Sequence record: NC_021531.1
Strand: one strand, 5' to 3'
Length of the DNA: 64,000 nt
Part shown: piece after piece, positions 36,895 to 49,810 of the stretch
Position numbering within the stretch: position 1 is the stretch's first letter
How the letters are laid out: each line of letters opens with the position of its first letter
The notes under the pieces: model-generated
Told to the model about the DNA's origin: nothing
Seen by the model: only the letters and a program-made list of their open reading frames with translations
Database searches by the model: none
Made by a program: the position numbers and the translations under genes

Positions 36895-37908
36895 ATGAAA
36901 CAGTATCAAGATTTAATGGCTGAAGTCTTTGCGAAAGGTACGCCGAAGAAAGACCGTACCGGTACAGGCACGCTTTCTATCTTCGGCCACCAGATGCGTT
37001 TCAACTTGCAAGAAGGTTTCCCGCTGGTAACGACCAAGCGTTGCCACCTGCGCTCTATTATCCATGAACTGCTGTGGTTCCTGAAAGGCGACACCAATAT
37101 CCAGTACCTGAAAGATAATGGTGTAACCATTTGGGACGAATGGGCGGACAAAAATGGCGACCTCGGTCCGGTATACGGTAAGCAGTGGCGGGCATGGACT
37201 GCGCATGATGAGGTCCATACTGGCAATAAGAAAATTATTGCTGAGATGGAAGAAGATGGGTGGGAAGAAGCGGGTTATCGCGAAGCTTCGATGCTGCTGA
37301 CTAAAGATATCGACCAGATTGCCAAAGTCATGGGCCAGTTGAAAAACGACCCGGATAATCGGCGTATCATCGTTAGTGCATGGAACGTAGCTGACCTTGA
37401 CGATATGGCCTTAGCTCCTTGCCACGCCTTCTTCCAGTTTTATACTCGTGAAATGTCCTTGGATGAGCGTGTACAGTGGGCGGAAGAAAACGACAACGAG
37501 CTGTGGTCTGATTACATCCACGCCACGTTTGTGGATGAAAACACCCGTCTCGGGTGGCTGGATAAAGCCGGGGTTCCTACGCGTAAGTTGTCTTGTCAGC
37601 TCTATCAGCGTAGTGCCGACGTGTTCTTGGGTGTGCCGTTTAACATCGCGTCGTATGCTCTACTGATTCACATGTTTGCACAGCAGGCGAATATGGCGGT
37701 GGGCGATTTCGTCTGGACCGGCGGTGATGTGCATCTGTATTCTAACCATCTGGAACAGGCACGTACTCAGTTAGGTCGTACTCCGCGTGCGTTGCCTAAG
37801 CTGATTATCAAACGTAAGCCGGACTCTATCTTCGACTATAAGTTCGAAGATTTTGATATCGAAGGCTACGACCCACACCCGGCTATTAAAGCACCGGTGG
37901 CGATATGA
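36895..37908 (+). CDS. thyA: thymidylate synthase with two insertions
   Basis: [60 protein letters not shown]-terminus. Confidence 0.97.
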
Positions 37909-38173: not shown

Positions 38174-38353
38174 ATGGCCAGTGATAGACCGGCGCAGGAA
38201 ATCGTAAGCGATATTCTTGCCGACTATAATGAGCGCGGATTACAGCAAATCACTTTACACAGCACGGGCGAGTTTATTCACGTCTCTGCTGTGGATGTGA
38301 AACGTAAACGCGTAGTTAATACTTACGCCCGTACGGAGCCTAAACGCCGATGA
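38174..38353 (+). CDS. small hypothetical protein
   Basis: Tightly packed ORF; ATGA overlap downstream. Confidence 0.6.
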   Translation: MASDRPAQEIVSDILADYNERGLQQITLHSTGEFIHVSAVDVKRKRVVNTYARTEPKRR

Positions 38354-39081
38354 GCAGAATCCCGCAGTATGACGATAAGAACCGACTTTATTACCCAATC
38401 ACTCTTATCGACACAGAAGGCCGTTTTACGATTAACGGTATTAGTTATGCGGTGGACGTAGACAACATTGAAAACTTCAGTGTGTTTAAACGTCCCAATG
38501 TTTATGTTGAGTTAGAACATCCGGCGCGTTTACCGACGATGTCTGACGAAGACTATCGTCGTCGAAATGCCAGCATCGAAACTCAAAACGTGGTGGGCAC
38601 GGTCGACGTAACTATCCTGCGTCCGAGTCGCAGTCGTGTTGTTGTAACAGGTAACTTCTACCCGGGCAACCTCAAACCTGAAATCCGCGAAGCCTTTGAA
38701 CGCGGGGACCTTTCGTTAGGTGTTCGTGCCCGTGTCACGACAGACCGGTTGGTGGACATCATCACGTGGGATTTGGTGTTCCTGCCTGAACGTGAACTGC
38801 GCCATGTGGAATGCGAGCGACCGCCGTTAAATACGACGCTGTTCGTTTCTTCCAATCGGGGCTATACGTGGTTCCCGGCAATGTTTCTCTGGATAGGCGA
38901 GAAAACGTTTGTCTGGCGCAACATGGTAGGTGGTGCGCAGGCTGATAACGAAATCACCAACAACAACCGCTTCACGTACTTCATGTGGTCACCTGTACCT
39001 GAGGGTGTTGAATTAAAAACGTATAGCGGCAATGATGTGCCCGATTTCCTACGCAAAAGGAGTGATGCGAATGCTAATTAA
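38350..39081 (+). CDS. hypothetical protein
   Basis: 243 aa; GGAG SD. Confidence 0.7.
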   Translation: MSRIPQYDDKNRLYYPITLIDTEGRFTINGISYAVDVDNIENFSVFKRPNVYVELEHPARLPTMSDEDYRRRNASIETQNVVGTVDVTILRPSRSRVVVTGNFYPGNLKPEIREAFERGDLSLGVRARVTTDRLVDIITWDLVFLPERELRHVECERPPLNTTLFVSSNRGYTWFPAMFLWIGEKTFVWRNMVGGAQADNEITNNNRFTYFMWSPVPEGVELKTYSGNDVPDFLRKRSDANAN

Positions 39082-39559: not shown

Positions 39560-40090
39560 ATGTCAGATAAAATCGTACCCTTCACACCGCGCCCGTCTAA
39601 CGGACCTTCACTGGATGTGAACCCAGTTGATGTGTCCGAGGTTGCTCAGTTCAGAGATTATGACACTGGCCGTATTGAAGTACCGCAGGCTGATGGCTCA
39701 ACCCGTTCGGTTATCTTCAACATGGATTTAGTTGACTGGTGGCTGGCATTGTCTGAGCGGTTTGTTAAAACGATGCCAGAAGGTCCGTATGGCCGCGCTT
39801 TCATCGGACTGAACAAACTCGAACACGCGGTTACGGATGTTTTCACGAACCGCAAGCGTCATCTTGAAATGGAGATTACGCGCCAGCAGTTCGAACAGTT
39901 TGTTCAGGCGGTTCCATGTCAACTGATGGAGACCACCCATCGTACCTGTCAGTTGAGCGTAGCGGAGTTCGTTATTGAACACGTTGAAGATAACATCTTC
40001 GCTAAGCAAATTCCGGCTGACCTTGAGTCAGCTATTTTCCTCTATCAAGTGGACGGCGAACGCTTCCGTCTCCACTACGTCGAACAGTAA
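39560..40090 (+). CDS. hypothetical protein
   Basis: Abuts the upstream stop; 176 aa. Confidence 0.7.
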   Translation: MSDKIVPFTPRPSNGPSLDVNPVDVSEVAQFRDYDTGRIEVPQADGSTRSVIFNMDLVDWWLALSERFVKTMPEGPYGRAFIGLNKLEHAVTDVFTNRKRHLEMEITRQQFEQFVQAVPCQLMETTHRTCQLSVAEFVIEHVEDNIFAKQIPADLESAIFLYQVDGERFRLHYVEQ

Positions 40091-40099
40091 GGGTAAGTA

Positions 40100-40336
40100 A
40101 TGAAAGAACGTAACGGTGTTGTAGATAACTCGCACATCTCCCTCGGTCGCGCTACCTCTTTAACAGGTGACCCGGTCGATGTCGCTCGCGGTCAGACCAC
40201 ACAGTTCCAGCATGCGGATGACTCGGCCTTCGATTTGGACGCTATCCCCGGCCTGGACCCTGAGGCAGGCGTCGAGGGCGGTGTCGACCCGTCCAAGGAA
40301 GACGATAACTGTACGGGAGGCGCATGCAAGATTTAA
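40100..40336 (+). CDS. small acidic disordered protein ending in an NrdA-like redox tail (CxxxxC-KI)
   Basis: AAGGG SD; C-terminus EDDNCTGGACKI versus E. coli NrdA QDDGCESGACKI. Confidence 0.75.
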   Translation: MKERNGVVDNSHISLGRATSLTGDPVDVARGQTTQFQHADDSAFDLDAIPGLDPEAGVEGGVDPSKEDDNCTGGACKI

Positions 40337-40809
40337 AGCCCGACAACACGGTCGCGCAACAAACCGCCGAGTTAATGGAAGAACACGCCCGAATTAACGA
40401 ACGTTACTCTCCTGACGACGGGGTGAGTTGGTTCGGAACACGTCGCCAGTTGGTAACCAAATACTACGCGGAATCGTTGCCATCGATTTGCTGGCAAGAA
40501 GTCAGTGAAAAGATTCGTACCCAGCGCGTGATTGTTTGCGCTGCGCTCCGTTACCCGGATTTGGATTTGGTGATTCCGGGTGCCCGTCACTATAGCCCAG
40601 ACATTGGTCGTTTACTCGACCGTCTGGAGAAGTTCGGTGTAATGCCCAAAAAGAAACAGCAAGTCGTTGGCGACAACCAAGGCTTCATTGACAACTTCGG
40701 TAATTACTGGACGCGTGAAGAAGCCCTGATAATTGCTAAAGCCGCCAGTCAGGTTAACCCTGATAAGTGCGGGCGTGAAAACGAGCTGTATTCTGAAGAC
40801 CTGTATTAA
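40324..40809 (+). CDS. conserved phage protein of unknown function
   Basis: IVCAALR, GARH, QGFIDNFGNYWTREEA, LYSEDLY pattern typical of a widespread phage family. Confidence 0.75.
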   Translation: MQDLKPDNTVAQQTAELMEEHARINERYSPDDGVSWFGTRRQLVTKYYAESLPSICWQEVSEKIRTQRVIVCAALRYPDLDLVIPGARHYSPDIGRLLDRLEKFGVMPKKKQQVVGDNQGFIDNFGNYWTREEALIIAKAASQVNPDKCGRENELYSEDLY

Positions 40810-41327: not shown

Positions 41328-42209
41328 ATGACCCGTCAAACTTTTCAAGTACCTGTAGCGTATACCATCATCAAACCGACTGATGGTGTGTTGGGTGACC
41401 TTATCCCCTCCATCAACAAATGGTCTGCGCAACAGGCTGCGCATCTTTCCGGCCCGGGCGTTAAGCTGGAAGCCCTGAAAGAGATCGCCATCAACAACGA
41501 AACCAAGCAGTGGCGTATCTCCGGCCGCGAAGCCATTAATGGCGACGTGTGGTTCTGGATGACTCCAACTGCACTGGTGTTTGAACATGAAGTGGTCGGT
41601 AAGACTACTTACCCGCGCGATGTTCCGCTGTTCAGCGTCGCTGAGTGTGTGGAAAATGTTGTAGGTTGGTCTACCGCTCGCGGTATTCTGGAAAACGGTC
41701 GTTGGGCTACGCAGGTCACTAAGTTCTACGAAGAAGACGGCGAAGCGGCAACGGGTATCAGCAAAACCCAACGTCAGGCTATCATGGACGGTTTAGGCGA
41801 TGCGCTGGTTGTACTGGTTAACATTACAGCGCTCATTGACTGGACGCCGAAGGTTATCGCAGTTATGCTGGATCGTGCCCGCGACCGTATTGAAAACAAT
41901 GTGCCTTTCGGTGACTCTCACCGCCTGTTCCACAAAATGCGTTTGAACTTCACGTTGATGAATGACGTTATCTATAACGCGTGCGATATGTATCCACTGA
42001 AAGATAACGGCAGACCTTTACTCGGTAACGATGAAGGTATCGAATTCGAAGAACTGATGTTGAAATCTCTCTGGTACATGGAAGCATTGGCCCGTGCGTA
42101 TGAAGTGACGCTGGAACAATGTTTCTCGCTGGCGTGGGACGAAATCAAAGACCGTAAAGGTTATTTGAACGCAGACGGTATCTTCATCAAAGAAGCTGAC
42201 GCGAAATAA
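41328..42209 (+). CDS. MazG-like nucleotide pyrophosphohydrolase with N-terminal extension and internal insert
   Basis: W..ARGI...Q..KFYEEDGE...DGLGDALVVL and C-terminal LEQCF..AWDEIKDRKG...GIFIKE. Confidence 0.8.
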   Translation: MTRQTFQVPVAYTIIKPTDGVLGDLIPSINKWSAQQAAHLSGPGVKLEALKEIAINNETKQWRISGREAINGDVWFWMTPTALVFEHEVVGKTTYPRDVPLFSVAECVENVVGWSTARGILENGRWATQVTKFYEEDGEAATGISKTQRQAIMDGLGDALVVLVNITALIDWTPKVIAVMLDRARDRIENNVPFGDSHRLFHKMRLNFTLMNDVIYNACDMYPLKDNGRPLLGNDEGIEFEELMLKSLWYMEALARAYEVTLEQCFSLAWDEIKDRKGYLNADGIFIKEADAK

Positions 42210-42219
42210 CAAAAACAAC

Positions 42220-42256
42220 TGGGTGATGCTTTATGCGTCACCCCTTTTATTTTTTT
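42220..42256 (+). terminator. intrinsic terminator
   Basis: gggtgatgc-ttta-tgcgtcaccc plus T tract. Confidence 0.8.
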
Positions 42257-44934: not shown

Positions 44935-45438
44935 ATGACAACTGTTTTCGTTTGCAGTGACTTTATTGTCGCAGACCGTGTATTGACGCGAGGCGACGAA
45001 ACGATACACGCTGATTTTAAGAAGCTACATCTCAATCGTGAGAAAACGATTGCTATCGCGGCAGTGGGTAACGTGAACTTTCGTAATCACCACAAAACTG
45101 TGGTTGACCATTTCTTCAAGGTGGTGGAGCAACGCTACACGGGGATTCCATCGCCCATGTTGTCTAAGAACGATGTGGCGGTGTTGGGCGACCTCCAGTT
45201 ATACGTTCTCACTGCACTGGATGTGTTTGTGATTACCCGTGACCAGAACGTCCAATGGGTTGGGGACGGCATGGTGGAAGGAGCAGGTACTGGATACCCG
45301 CTGGCTTGTGCAGCGTACTCACTCGGTGCTAAACCTGAGCATATCGTGCCACTGACTGCGAAGATTGACCCAATGTCGTCCAGTAAGTTCAACATCATCT
45401 ATCGCCGCGAACTCAAACGCATTACCCCGAGGAAATAA
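44935..45438 (+). CDS. hslV: HslV/proteasome-beta-like Ntn-hydrolase peptidase
   Basis: M-T-T N-terminus (Thr1 nucleophile), IVADR, conserved Lys (FKKL), AAVGN, GAGTG..LA.AA, A.IDPMSS. Confidence 0.7.
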   Translation: MTTVFVCSDFIVADRVLTRGDETIHADFKKLHLNREKTIAIAAVGNVNFRNHHKTVVDHFFKVVEQRYTGIPSPMLSKNDVAVLGDLQLYVLTALDVFVITRDQNVQWVGDGMVEGAGTGYPLACAAYSLGAKPEHIVPLTAKIDPMSSSKFNIIYRRELKRITPRK

Positions 45439-45440
45439 CC

Positions 45441-45989
45441 ATGGATATTGCAGCCATTGTCACGAAGAAAGAACTCTTTATCCGCAGTGTCCATTGGGCC
45501 GCAGGTTTACCACAGCCGTTAAACATGGATGTCTGCTATACGCCATTCGGCTTTATTTTCCCCAGCAATAATTTCCAACCTGTTATCGATGCATTAAATA
45601 CAAAACAGGTTGATGCTATGGCGTCCGGTTTGTTACGTTGGGCTATCTTAACCCATGACAATGAACTCCGTTTCGGACGGATTAATTCGGAGTTCTGGAC
45701 ACTTAATACTGTATCCAAAGACCAGCGGTTTTATTGTTTTGCAGATGAGGCAGAATCGCATTATTTGGCGGTAATGATTCACCTGATGTCCAGTAACGTT
45801 ATCGAAGAAGAGATGCAGTTGAAAGACACTGCCCCTCAGCTGTTACGTCGACTGCGTAAACACTGGCCGTTAGTTGGCGACTATCTGAAGTTCAACCGTA
45901 ACGAAATCGTAGCAGAGTTAAACAAACGCTATCCTCATCCTGAAGAGATTCTTTTCCATTCTAAATTCACACGAGTAATCAAAGACTAA
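45441..45989 (+). CDS. hypothetical protein
   Basis: GAGG SD; 182 aa. Confidence 0.7.
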   Translation: MDIAAIVTKKELFIRSVHWAAGLPQPLNMDVCYTPFGFIFPSNNFQPVIDALNTKQVDAMASGLLRWAILTHDNELRFGRINSEFWTLNTVSKDQRFYCFADEAESHYLAVMIHLMSSNVIEEEMQLKDTAPQLLRRLRKHWPLVGDYLKFNRNEIVAELNKRYPHPEEILFHSKFTRVIKD

Positions 45990-45990
45990 T

Positions 45991-46737
45991 ATGGCTAAAT
46001 CTAAATCCCCACGTAAAAAGAAACCCGCTAACTCCAAACACGCTGCGCGTCACATCGTGCTGGCTATCAAAGCGGCGTATAACAAGCTGTTCTTCATGGG
46101 TTCATCTAACTGCCCTATTCAGGCGTTCAAGACCAATACCCTGCGCATGCACCTGAAACCGAACGACGTGCGTTTGGCTATCCCAACGCTGTTGGATGAG
46201 CTACGCTTCTTCCCACGTGACTGGCATCTGTGGGTCGGGGTGTTCTGCGAGAAAGACGGCGAGCAGTGGGTTGAAACCTCCGTTTGTAAAATGCCACAGT
46301 TCGTTATCAAAGACTTCTCTGACAACGCTGAACATATCGTTCGCGGGGTAATGGCAGAAGAGGCGGTAGAACACATGGTCGGTTATGCGTATTTGGTCGC
46401 GCCTAACGATTACTACAACCTTGAAGTCATGTCCGATGCGTTGTGTGATGAATGGGTTGAAGCGAAAATCTTCGACAAGTCAACACACCTGGACAAAGAC
46501 CTGCTCAAAATGAACGAGCACGATATCGCCGCCGCCTTCATGGGCTTACCGAACTTTGTCATGAAATCCCGTGACAAAATCGTGCAGAAAACTATCGAGC
46601 GTCTGGAGGCGAAAGGGGTGAAGGTGACTGAAGAGTTTGTCCAATCTCACTTCGACCAGGAAGAGATAGTCACCGCGTTAGTACCCGGAACCACGCAACG
46701 TAACCCGTTCAGTCTGGACAAAGGAAATCCGCTATGA
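45991..46737 (+). CDS. hypothetical protein with basic N-terminus
   Basis: MAKSKSPRKKKP; 248 aa. Confidence 0.75.
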   Translation: MAKSKSPRKKKPANSKHAARHIVLAIKAAYNKLFFMGSSNCPIQAFKTNTLRMHLKPNDVRLAIPTLLDELRFFPRDWHLWVGVFCEKDGEQWVETSVCKMPQFVIKDFSDNAEHIVRGVMAEEAVEHMVGYAYLVAPNDYYNLEVMSDALCDEWVEAKIFDKSTHLDKDLLKMNEHDIAAAFMGLPNFVMKSRDKIVQKTIERLEAKGVKVTEEFVQSHFDQEEIVTALVPGTTQRNPFSLDKGNPL

Positions 46738-46967
46738 TTGGTGCGCAATATAATGACCCTTCTCATCCTGATTATGTCCCCGCGCTACAACGGGTGATGT
46801 CTTTGGCGAAAGAGAAAAAACATGATGTGACTATTGTCTACTCAGGTTCGCAAGATGCATGGAGCGTTGATATCGGTAACGACTATTATAGTCGAGTTTT
46901 GCCTACTGCAAACAACACGCTCTCTGAAGTGATGGCTACCACGATTAACCATCTCGAAAAGCTTTAA
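46734..46967 (+). CDS. small hypothetical protein
   Basis: ATGA overlap; AAGGA SD; hairpin 46982-47002 follows. Confidence 0.7.
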   Translation: MIGAQYNDPSHPDYVPALQRVMSLAKEKKHDVTIVYSGSQDAWSVDIGNDYYSRVLPTANNTLSEVMATTINHLEKL

Positions 46968-47032
46968 AAAATACATTTATACCCCTTACTTTGTGTAAGG
47001 GGATATAGTTATTTTCTTCGTGGAGAAGTCAA

Positions 47033-47353
47033 ATGAAAAAGAAACTGTTGCTACTTTTGCCGCTCATCGCGCTGGCAGGGTGCGATACAGCTCCAACCAA
47101 CGCTTATCAAGACCAGGCGTTACGGCGTCAGATTTTCAAAGAGTGTCTGGAGTCAATTCCGAAAGGTCCGGAAAAGATTGATAACTCTAACGACTGGCAG
47201 GAAGTAGTGGAAGAGTGCGGTGACCAAGCCGACAAAATGTCTTCTTTCAATGTTGAGATTCCGGGCAACACTGGCGGCCAGACGTACTACTTTAACGACA
47301 ACATTAAGAGTGGCGAAGAAAAGCCACGTGAAAGCTGGAAACCGCAACTATGA
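47033..47353 (+). CDS. lipoprotein
   Basis: MKKK, hydrophobic core, lipobox LAG-C-D. Confidence 0.85.
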   Translation: MKKKLLLLLPLIALAGCDTAPTNAYQDQALRRQIFKECLESIPKGPEKIDNSNDWQEVVEECGDQADKMSSFNVEIPGNTGGQTYYFNDNIKSGEEKPRESWKPQL

Positions 47354-47607
47354 AAACAACCTTACTCGCAATTACAGTCGCAGTATTGTCACTGACCGCT
47401 TGTGACCAGAATAAAAAGCAAGCAGTGTACCAGACAGATGAGGTCAAGGAAGAACGTTTGTATCTGGCGTGTCTGGACGCAGTAAAGGTGAAAGTAAAAG
47501 CTGGTGAAGACAATCTTGAAGATGGTATCACTGCATGCCGTACTAACGCTAACGCACTTTCCTCCAAACTGGTTTATGTTCATGCTGATGGTAAAAATGC
47601 TCGTTAA
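47350..47607 (+). CDS. lipoprotein, paralogue of the previous gene
   Basis: MK, hydrophobic core, lipobox LTA-C-D; shared two-Cys pattern. Confidence 0.85.
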   Translation: MKTTLLAITVAVLSLTACDQNKKQAVYQTDEVKEERLYLACLDAVKVKVKAGEDNLEDGITACRTNANALSSKLVYVHADGKNAR

Positions 47608-47695
47608 GACTGGCGCGTACGCTGTCGGTACTGTCGGAGTTGTCGTGGGGTCTGCGTTCTGCGTATACCTGCTTTCTTATTACGTTATTGTGTAA
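47597..47695 (+). CDS. micro membrane peptide (32 aa)
   Basis: Overlaps the lipoprotein stop; almost wholly hydrophobic. Confidence 0.45.
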   Translation: MLVKTGAYAVGTVGVVVGSAFCVYLLSYYVIV

Positions 47696-47741
47696 ACTGT
47701 CACCTGCCTACTATGTGTGGGCGGGTACTAGAGGATAAAAA

Positions 47742-49805
47742 ATGAAAGGTCCGAACGGAATTATGTCTCCCGTTGAGATGGTAAGCGTTTTTGATAAGTC
47801 AGTGCGTGGGCAGGAGGAGGCGAAACGTCAATTGTCTATTGCGCTCTTTAACCGTCATCGACGTGCAAAGCTGTCTGCAGAAGACCGCAAGTACGTCAAG
47901 AAACAGAACATCCTCATCGAAGGGCCAACTGGTTCTGGTAAGACGGCGTTAATGCGTGTACTGCGCGAAGACTTCGGTCTGCCGGTGTTGGAAGTTGACA
48001 TTACGGAATATAGCGAAGCAGGTTATCACGGTAAGTCAGTTGACGACATGATTAAAGAGTTGCAGGGTATCGATTTCCGTGTGCCGAAGTGGTTTAACGA
48101 GAAGCCGCCGGTTAAGAAAGCTGAACCTGTTAAGCTTGAAAGCAACAATGACAGCTTCGACCCAACGTTCGTTCGCGATAAAAAGACGGCGCGTGAAATC
48201 TTCATTGCGATGCGTATTATGCTCATCGGCATGGTGGGTGCACGGGTTTATCCGATGCATGTTTTCAGTGACCCTAACGCAGGCTCTATGCTACATCGTA
48301 CCGTGGAAGAAAACGCCGAAGAAAATCCAGATGAACTGATTCGTTTCTTCCGTCGCGGTGTTGATTTGGTCATGTCCAAAGATATCCCGTTGACCGGTAA
48401 GTTCATGGAGCTGGCTAACCACACCGCCGAGTCACTGATGACCATGGACGAAATCGGCAACCCTGAAGCGGAAATCACCGACGAGTTCTTTGCCAAGTTC
48501 CTACTGCCGCAGCAAACACTGGTTGGGATGGTCAGTTCATTAGTGAACCTTGACGTAGCAGACTACAACGCGATTTGGGATATCAAAGTCCCTTATCAGG
48601 AAATCAACGAGTGGCCGAGCAGTGATTTAGCTGGCGACAAGTCAGGTTTCTATCGTGAGCGTTTGAAAGCAGCCATGGTTGCGTATTTCTTCCGTGCGCT
48701 CATCGCGGGTCTGATTAAGACCGGTGTCAGCAAAGTAGAAGACCACGCTAGCAAGACAATGGCCATGCAGCGTTATAACGGCAAAGACATGGCGAAAGAA
48801 GTCGCGTCGATGTTCGGGTTGGGCTTTGATGCTGCAGCGCAGTCTCAGGAGAAACTGAAAGAGCAGGTTCGCGCAGGTATGCCTTGTATGGCGCAGGAAC
48901 GTGTTATTCAACTGGGCCGTAGTTTCCGGGCGTGGACTAACCAATTGTCCAAACTCAAGATGGTTGGTGAGTCGAAGGTTATCTTCCCGGCGAAGATGAC
49001 TGCCGCGTGGGAAGAGTTGAAAGAAATGTCTTTCGATGATTTCTGGAAGCTGGCCACTGCAGAGATTGCCCAACGCAGCGCTAAACAGATTCGTGAAGAC
49101 GTTCAACACGCGTCATTAATCTTTGCACCGAATGCGGACACGCCTGATTTTGGTGGGATGACATTCCGTCCAATGGGTCGTCCAATGGGTGGTTTGGGCA
49201 TTCCGGGACTGGGCCACATCTTTGGCATGGGTGGTGGGGCATCAGTGTCAGGCGATAGCAAAGAGTTCCTTGAGAACTTTGCTGTGGTCTTCATTGATGA
49301 AATCGATAAACTGATTCAGGAACCGGGCCGTTCGGGAGATGTTTCTCGAATGGGTGTGCAACGTGGGCTGTTAAAACTGGTAGAAGGGGGTGTGTACGCA
49401 GGTATTGATACATCCAACATTCTGTTTGTTGGTGCAGGCGCGTTTTCCGGGACTTCCCCCGCCAAGCTGTTGCCTGAACTCGTTGGTCGCTTCCCAATTC
49501 GCGCACGTCTTAAAGCATTGACGAACGAAGACTATGTGGCCATCTGTAAACTGGAGCGTTCTCCGTTCAACATGTATTGTAAGATGCTGGGAACGGATGA
49601 GGTGAAGGTCAAATACGACGAAGATACATTCGAATACATTGCTCAGTTAACCGAGCTTGAGAACCAAGAGTTCAATCTTGGCGCTCGTCGTATTGAAGGT
49701 ATTATCGAACGTGTTTTTGCGCCGGCTATGTTCGAGCCGGAGAAATATTTAGAACACGGATTTGATATTCGTGGTGAAACACTCCGTAAAACCTTAAGAG
49801 GCTAA
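47742..49805 (+). CDS. hslU: HslU (ClpY)-like AAA+ unfoldase with expanded I-domain
   Basis: GQEEAKR..SIALFNRHRR, NILIEGPTGSGKT, VFIDEIDK, VSRMGVQRGLLKLVEG, TSNILF...GAF, LLPELVGRFPIR, NLGARR. Confidence 0.88.
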   Translation: MKGPNGIMSPVEMVSVFDKSVRGQEEAKRQLSIALFNRHRRAKLSAEDRKYVKKQNILIEGPTGSGKTALMRVLREDFGLPVLEVDITEYSEAGYHGKSVDDMIKELQGIDFRVPKWFNEKPPVKKAEPVKLESNNDSFDPTFVRDKKTAREIFIAMRIMLIGMVGARVYPMHVFSDPNAGSMLHRTVEENAEENPDELIRFFRRGVDLVMSKDIPLTGKFMELANHTAESLMTMDEIGNPEAEITDEFFAKFLLPQQTLVGMVSSLVNLDVADYNAIWDIKVPYQEINEWPSSDLAGDKSGFYRERLKAAMVAYFFRALIAGLIKTGVSKVEDHASKTMAMQRYNGKDMAKEVASMFGLGFDAAAQSQEKLKEQVRAGMPCMAQERVIQLGRSFRAWTNQLSKLKMVGESKVIFPAKMTAAWEELKEMSFDDFWKLATAEIAQRSAKQIREDVQHASLIFAPNADTPDFGGMTFRPMGRPMGGLGIPGLGHIFGMGGGASVSGDSKEFLENFAVVFIDEIDKLIQEPGRSGDVSRMGVQRGLLKLVEGGVYAGIDTSNILFVGAGAFSGTSPAKLLPELVGRFPIRARLKALTNEDYVAICKLERSPFNMYCKMLGTDEVKVKYDEDTFEYIAQLTELENQEFNLGARRIEGIIERVFAPAMFEPEKYLEHGFDIRGETLRKTLRG

Positions 49806-49810
49806 GCATC

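Follow-up and report, generated by a model that had tools for sequence, protein, structure and literature searches.

A phage micro-protein that ends in a redox tail of the class Ia ribonucleotide reductase type

Introduction

What use could a bacteriophage have for a small gene whose product ends like a large enzyme of its host and carries none of that enzyme's catalytic part? The supply of DNA precursors has its bottleneck at ribonucleotide reductase (RNR), and the regeneration of its active site by the C-terminal tail of the alpha subunit, NrdA, is slow and poorly visualised. The tail is reduced by thioredoxin or glutaredoxin (Trx/Grx) and then re-reduces the active-site disulfide after each turnover (PMC4078304, PMC5704485). 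The question arises from a stretch of 64,000 nucleotides, here called the window, which corresponds with 100% identity to positions 62001-126000 of the genome record of Cronobacter phage CR5 (NC_021531.1, 223,989 bp), a jumbo phage of the genus Derbicusvirus; a position in the record is the window position plus 62000. A sequence-only reading of the window had singled out one micro-ORF as a stand-alone protein bearing a redox tail of the class Ia NrdA type, and our analysis supports this assignment, the likeness being stronger than that reading had stated.

Results

The micro-ORF and its product

The micro-ORF is a real gene, CR5_113 (Table 1), and its earlier description as an acidic stand-alone frame with its own Shine-Dalgarno (SD) sequence and with cysteines confined to the tail is borne out. 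The SD-like element lies 6 nt upstream of the ATG and overlaps the stop codon of CR5_112. The protein contains 15 Asp and Glu, 6 Lys and Arg and 10 Gly residues, has a pI of 4.2, and has C71 and C76 as its only cysteines. Based on an AlphaFold2 model built with the family alignment (mean pLDDT 56.5, pTM 0.16, zero secondary-structure elements), CR5_113 is predicted to be intrinsically disordered. No family was matched in Pfam (E up to 0.01) or NCBIfam, so that neither of the class Ia RNR alpha domains, the Ribonuc_red_lgC barrel and the all-alpha/ATP-cone, was found in its 78 residues, which agrees with the previous remark that no RNR catalytic domain is attached. Nor is CR5_113 a member of the Trx/Grx superfamily, as it has Cx4C instead of CxxC, no Trx fold and no Pfam match.

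Table 1. Positions of CR5_113, its parts and its neighbours in the window
Feature	Position	Strand	Remark
thyA	36895-37908	+	Recurrent upstream neighbour of the family
SD-like AGGG of CR5_113 (in TAAGGGT, AAGGG-type)	40090-40093	+	Read from the sequence
Micro-ORF CR5_113	40100-40336	+	ATG start, 78 aa, TAA stop; deposited annotation 'hypothetical protein'
SLTGDP, CR5_113 residues 20-25	40157-40174	+	Invariant in 11 long-form members, absent from short forms
Second conserved segment, CR5_113 residues 49-63	40244-40288	+	From the 19-member alignment; absent from NrdA
Acidic run and NrdA-type tail, CR5_113 residues 67-78	40298-40333	+	From alignments and profile
CR5_114 (Arn.3-like, phrog_839)	40324-40809	+	Start overlaps the tail codons
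mazG-like pyrophosphohydrolase	41328-42209	+	Recurrent downstream neighbour in jumbo phages
Strongest terminator-like hairpin of the CR5 block	42221-42243	+	Directly after mazG

Likeness to the C-terminus of NrdA

E. coli NrdA, taken from a commensal chromosome (NZ_CP028746.1, L012:12996-15281, minus strand), ends in PSIQDDGCESGACKI, and CR5_113 ends in PSKEDDNCTGGACKI. BLASTP aligned residues 64-78 of CR5_113 with residues 747-761 of NrdA at a pairwise E of 5e-5, the two C-terminal ends being flush; 10 of these 15 residues are identical, and over the last 12 our recount returned the eight identities that had been reported from the letters. The feature of class Ia RNR alpha that is present in CR5_113 is the cysteine pair C71/C76, which follows a flexible acidic linker at the extreme C-terminal end. 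A phmmer comparison of the whole protein with the PDB gave no match to NrdA. When a profile of the last 30 residues (alignment A2, 17 members) was searched against 177,635 distinct PDB sequences, the best 14 matches were all C-termini of class Ia RNR alpha, with E about 1e-3, and these 14 included 1qfn_B, an isolated 25-residue R1 tail peptide that was matched over its last 15 residues with an E of 0.007. Comparison of CR5_113 with NrdB revealed no likeness.

Two further observations bear on how the resemblance may have come about. The tail pattern occurs once in CR5 and once in SPN3US, a phage of a different genus whose orthologue of CR5_113 is SPN3US_0234 (gp234), out of some 4,000 open frames per genome that are 30 codons or longer, and on these counts and alignments we judge the match to NrdA to exceed chance. 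In the hosts, the last eight residues of NrdA are identical in 80 of 80 Enterobacterales species, including Franconibacter, Erwinia and Pantoea, and the seven residues preceding them are nearly identical across these species. The tail codons of E. coli and CR5 share 32 of 48 nucleotides and differ at synonymous sites, which rules out a recent capture of the tail from host DNA.

Distribution and conservation of the family

Homologues were found by tblastn in about 80 cultured SPN3US-like jumbo phages of Seoulvirus, Erskinevirus, Derbicusvirus and other genera, which infect Salmonella, Erwinia, Escherichia, Cronobacter, Proteus and Serratia, and several other phage lineages carry them as well. 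The family is spread over three PHROGs, all without an assigned function; neither Pfam, NCBIfam nor PHROGs attaches a function or a name to it, and our literature searches turned up neither a study of SPN3US gp234 nor one of a free NrdA tail. When 5.8 billion proteins were searched through a word index, 15 family clusters were returned; HMMER, run exhaustively over 1.84 billion representatives with alignment A3 as the query (the window protein and the returned database proteins, IMG/VR rows left out), gave 17 matches, all of 39-157 aa. Two metagenomic representatives (P0028 and P0030) leave the reading frame before their end, each showing one or more apparent frame changes, probably through read errors. 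A short form of 47-49 aa occurs on IMG/VR contigs of about 60 kb, and a look-up of the encoding contigs placed another member in an SU10-like podophage lineage.

Family members are 39-98 aa long, and their N-terminal part varies in length and sequence or is lost. Invariant in 19 aligned members are P50, G51, D53, P54, G61, V62, D63, C71, G74, A75, C76 and K77, and I78 is conserved in at least 90% of them; C71, G74, A75, C76 and K77 are likewise invariant in an alignment of 17 members. Thus the comparison of homologues that the sequence-only reading had proposed finds the tail conserved, with both cysteines invariant, while the rest drifts. Each of the 11 invariant residues among the last 30 is encoded by two to four synonymous codons (13 gaplessly aligned members). 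Because these residues use several synonymous codons, selection acts on the peptide, and selection at the protein level argues for translation of CR5_113. Judged from the alignments, the constrained part of the protein is its last ~30 residues only, and the second conserved segment within it (Table 1) is a candidate docking segment.

An alternative explanation of the tail had been raised at the outset, namely that the next gene draws its GGAGG SD and its ATG from the tail codons, so that part of the match might be a by-product of this overlap. The observation is accurate, for the GGAGG (40316-40320) and the ATG (40324-40326) of CR5_114 do lie within the Gly-Gly-Ala-Cys codons. The explanation built on it fails: in SPN3US, in phiEaH2 and in an uncultivated jumbo phage (L096) the tail is conserved though no downstream gene overlaps it, and the SD-making GGA glycine codon is found in 1 of 13 members, CR5 alone. 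The overlap is a local, opportunistic arrangement peculiar to CR5, and CR5_114, which is confined to the Derbicusvirus group, is probably outside the tail system.

Gene neighbourhood

CR5_113 does lie between thyA and a mazG-like gene, as had been stated, with five other genes separating thyA from the ORF and two separating the ORF from mazG. Across the family, thyA or thyX is the usual neighbour. In jumbo phages thyA comes first and is followed by a few genes that differ by genus, then by the micro-ORF and by mazG; in CR5 all genes of this segment point the same way, and it reads as a single unit; a sigma-70 promoter scan of this block was uninformative because the phage has its own RNA polymerases. 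The 60-kb lineage encodes a dCMP-deaminase-like protein, an RdgC-like protein, a dNMP kinase and ThyX next to the micro-ORF, and for a 277-aa protein encoded upstream of the micro-ORF neither phage records nor PHROGs contain a relative. Two more metagenomic members sit directly downstream of thyA. The exception is the SU10-like member, which is outside any nucleotide cluster; on its contig (L130:3877-5677), ~1.8 kb without a called gene is followed by the 40-aa member, alone between divergent gene blocks.

In L096, the 237-kb uncultivated jumbo phage mentioned above, a full-length phrog_10453 protein is fused in frame with the tail module (L096:2188-3117). The fusion is followed by a terminator, and the small gene that separates the two parts in SPN3US is missing. 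The phrog_10453 proteins are the family of SPN3US_0232, which CR5 lacks. We also considered SPN3US_0232 and CR5_110 as one family, by which the L096 protein would have been an 'S80-like + tail' fusion, and rejected this because direct comparison shows no relation between the two.

Some other features of the region are recorded here in their own right. CR5_110 (38350-39081) gives a weak Peptidase_S80 (prohead-protease-like) match within the nucleotide-metabolism block; the real head maturation protease, CR5_213, is encoded a long way off, and CR5_110 is unrelated to the SPN3US gene in the equivalent position. CR5 ThyA has 337 aa and covers the full 266-position Pfam model, which implies an internal insertion of about 70 residues, and the thyA genes of SPN3US-like relatives are of similar length. 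An AAA+ ATPase, CR5_117, comes after mazG, and further downstream of the block (44935-49806) the genes for the HslV-like peptidase CR5_121 and the HslU-domain ATPase CR5_127 are separated by only a few others. A pair of radical SAM genes, whose role is unassigned, is conserved in CR5 (record 132830-134978) and SPN3US (140024-142139) and does not adjoin the micro-ORF.

RNR genes in carrier phages

The deposited annotation of CR5 lists no RNR gene, and Pfam revealed no RNR domain in eight long unannotated CR5 proteins. When the entire CR5 genome was searched by local tblastn with the two E. coli subunits, NrdA and NrdB, only the CR5_113 tail was matched, and this tail is the best NrdA match in the 224 kb. 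In SPN3US, too, neither the annotation nor Pfam nor tblastn shows an RNR alpha or beta, also when a phage NrdA/NrdB pair served as query. This whole-genome check covered the two complete genomes, and the flanks of 34 carrier loci (229 kb) contain no RNR gene. It had been proposed that the full genome be checked for an NrdA lacking its tail; CR5 encodes no NrdA at all. The related suggestion, that the micro-protein is the detached tail of a split phage NrdA, is refuted as a present-day arrangement by the lack of RNR alpha and beta in CR5 and SPN3US. Screening for CxxC motifs in search of a phage-encoded thioredoxin or glutaredoxin gave CR5_228 and CR5_132 only, neither with a recognisable domain.

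Phage NrdA tails and a possible origin

Phage class Ia NrdA is represented by nearly 3,000 records. The NrdA proteins of T2, Agtrevirus P46FS4 and Aeromonas phage Ahp1 have Cx2C tails with other final residues, and because these tails differ we regard that of CR5_113 as being of the enterobacterial host type. One uncultivated phage NrdA (L119/L120) also has a Cx4C tail with the G-A-C-K-I ending, and its last 12 residues are those of several free micro-proteins. The nrdA of this phage is interrupted by an intein and lies in two ORFs, which flank a free-standing gene for a GIY-YIG endonuclease (L120:93-3210); after it come a 204-aa ORF of unassigned function, nrdB and a ClpX-like ATPase gene.

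Residues 8-78 of CR5_113 are collinear with the last ~70 residues of the L119/L120 NrdA (36% identity, pairwise E 2e-9), and hhalign of alignment A1 against this protein gave a probability of 94%. With the tail removed, the signal between the two is weak (BLASTP E 0.008; 3/2000 in a shuffle test), and no NrdA signal was obtained in this way for Derbicus, for Phobos or against E. coli NrdA. Further, the SLTGDP motif of the long forms (Table 1) is collinear with the NrdA invariant S-x-N-T-x-x-D-P, with a profile-profile (hhalign) E of 4e-4 and a probability of just 35%. On this weak evidence, CR5_113 could plausibly be derived from the 3' end of a phage nrdA.

Discussion

Because CR5 has no RNR, the target of the CR5_113 tail would be the relay of the host. 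We hypothesize that CR5_113 is expressed together with thyA and mazG, that the free tail would be reduced by host Trx/Grx and/or would enter the active site of host NrdA in trans, and that the protein would thereby serve as an extra electron shuttle sustaining host RNR turnover for a 224-kb phage in need of host dNTP synthesis. That CR5_113 acts in this manner, as a trans-acting tail mimic in the Trx/Grx-to-NrdA relay of the host and most likely as an auxiliary shuttle, is the reading to which we lean, tentatively and at somewhat less than an even chance. The shuttle is favoured because of the dNTP-producing neighbour genes and the dependence on host RNR; which proteins it binds and whether it raises or lowers RNR activity are what we infer, and a shuttle, a decoy and a competitor would look alike in sequence. 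Several considerations speak against it. The tethered tail of NrdA is already at a very high local concentration, so that what a free copy would add is not obvious; identical features fit an inhibitor or a decoy; the member of the SU10-like lineage is not in a nucleotide cluster; and the L096 fusion could mean that the tail serves phage proteins and not host NrdA.

Foremost among the other explanations is that the tail occupies the active site of host NrdA, or titrates Trx/Grx, and so lowers RNR activity or diverts reducing power. All of the tail-mimicry evidence from sequence fits this equally, and the candidate docking segment at residues 49-63 could give tight binding. A free C-terminal fragment of RNR alpha binds the large subunit in trans and inhibits growth in the case of Neurospora UN-24 (PMC3618301), and PMC4078304 cites yeast Sml1 as acting on the function of the C-terminal tail. 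However, for phages such as CR5 and SPN3US that lack an RNR of their own, blocking the host enzyme would cut the main de novo source of dNTPs, and the gene resides among dNTP-producing genes rather than early host-takeover genes; we consider inhibition or titration rather unlikely, though a serious contender. Less likely still is that the tail brings host Trx/Grx, or their electrons, to a phage partner other than RNR. Such a partner could be served in trans or in cis, and the in-frame fusion in L096 would be the cis case. It also suits this explanation that the isolated tail peptide has a solved structure of its own, 1qfn_B, which we take to be the R1 tail 25-mer bound to glutaredoxin 1. The 1QFN entry is listed among glutaredoxin structures (PMC10897161). 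Yet a single fusion was seen, phrog_10453 is missing from CR5, the immediate upstream genes vary between genera, no conserved cysteine-rich partner was identified, and the CxxC screen recognised no phage redoxin.

A functionless relic or chance ORF would accord with an N-terminal part that resembles a decaying NrdA remnant, and a RiPP-type precursor matured by phage radical SAM enzymes with the two radical SAM proteins that CR5 and SPN3US each encode; taken together we hold these to be very improbable. Purifying selection on the protein across several lineages speaks against them, the CR5 radical SAM genes are about 30 kb distant from the micro-ORF and not adjacent to it, no such Pfam family is recorded for the called genes around the micro-ORF on three other carrier contigs (L130, L131 and L133), and the tail match is specific to NrdA. 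Hardly credible, finally, is a detached tail that works with a tail-less phage alpha subunit. The 12 terminal residues that the L119/L120 NrdA shares with several free micro-proteins and its collinearity with CR5_113 would fit such a split enzyme, but the idea is refuted for CR5 and SPN3US and finds no RNR gene in the carrier flanks; a split phage NrdA is viable solely as an evolutionary origin.

Returning to the trans-acting mimic in the host relay, CR5_113 probably acts on the DNA-precursor supply of the host in a previously undescribed way. We regard it as quite possible, though short of probable, that several RNR-less phage lineages encode a spare tail for the host RNR relay and thereby drive or re-gate the host enzyme in trans. 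If true, no earlier viral factor would be known to act where RNR has its thiols regenerated, nor any earlier RNR tail that stands alone in nature, and a diffusible tail under selection in host-RNR-dependent phages would reveal a new viral control point over nucleotide metabolism. RNR enzymologists would gain a ready-made probe of tail recognition by thioredoxin, by glutaredoxin and by the active site. Moreover, a family hitherto hypothetical only, in three PHROGs and about 80 cultured jumbo phages, is given a testable role, and if the plausible origin holds it would show how the final, exon-like part of an enzyme gene that has been lost can give rise to a micro-protein.

Considering known systems, the building element, the RNR redox tail, is already known, and what is new is its free-standing gene form. 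With the tail of E. coli NrdA (C754/C759) CR5_113 shares the extreme C-terminal position, the Cx4C spacing, the G-A-C-K-I ending and the preceding acidic run. The family differs in lacking a catalytic barrel, in presenting the tail on a carrier of 39-98 aa that is predicted to be disordered, in phages without RNR (CR5 and SPN3US), and in having an extra conserved segment that NrdA lacks. The 1QFN peptide is the same tail as a free peptide, but it is a laboratory construct whereas CR5_113 is a natural gene. Small size and disorder, the latter predicted for CR5_113, are common to CR5_113 and yeast Sml1 (Spd1/Hug1/Dif1-type), and Zhang et al. reportedly found in 2007 that Sml1 acts on the RNR large subunit in relation to its C-terminal tail. 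CR5_113 has no sequence relation to the Sml1 and Spd1 families (no Pfam match, E up to 0.01), and Sml1-type proteins are eukaryotic inhibitors without redox cysteines, whereas the CR5_113 family conserves its cysteines. GrcA/YfiD is a folded stand-alone C-terminal module of pyruvate formate-lyase that replaces the damaged domain in trans. It resembles CR5_113 in that both are small separate copies of the C-terminal module of a large radical enzyme, and it differs in enzyme and chemistry, CR5_113 being proposed as a viral thiol tail for a host enzyme. The C-terminal RNR alpha fragment of Neurospora UN-24, when produced by itself, binds in trans to the large subunit in a complex (PMC3618301); it differs from CR5_113 as a fungal, allele-specific and toxic domain of 135 aa that is not a natural separate gene.
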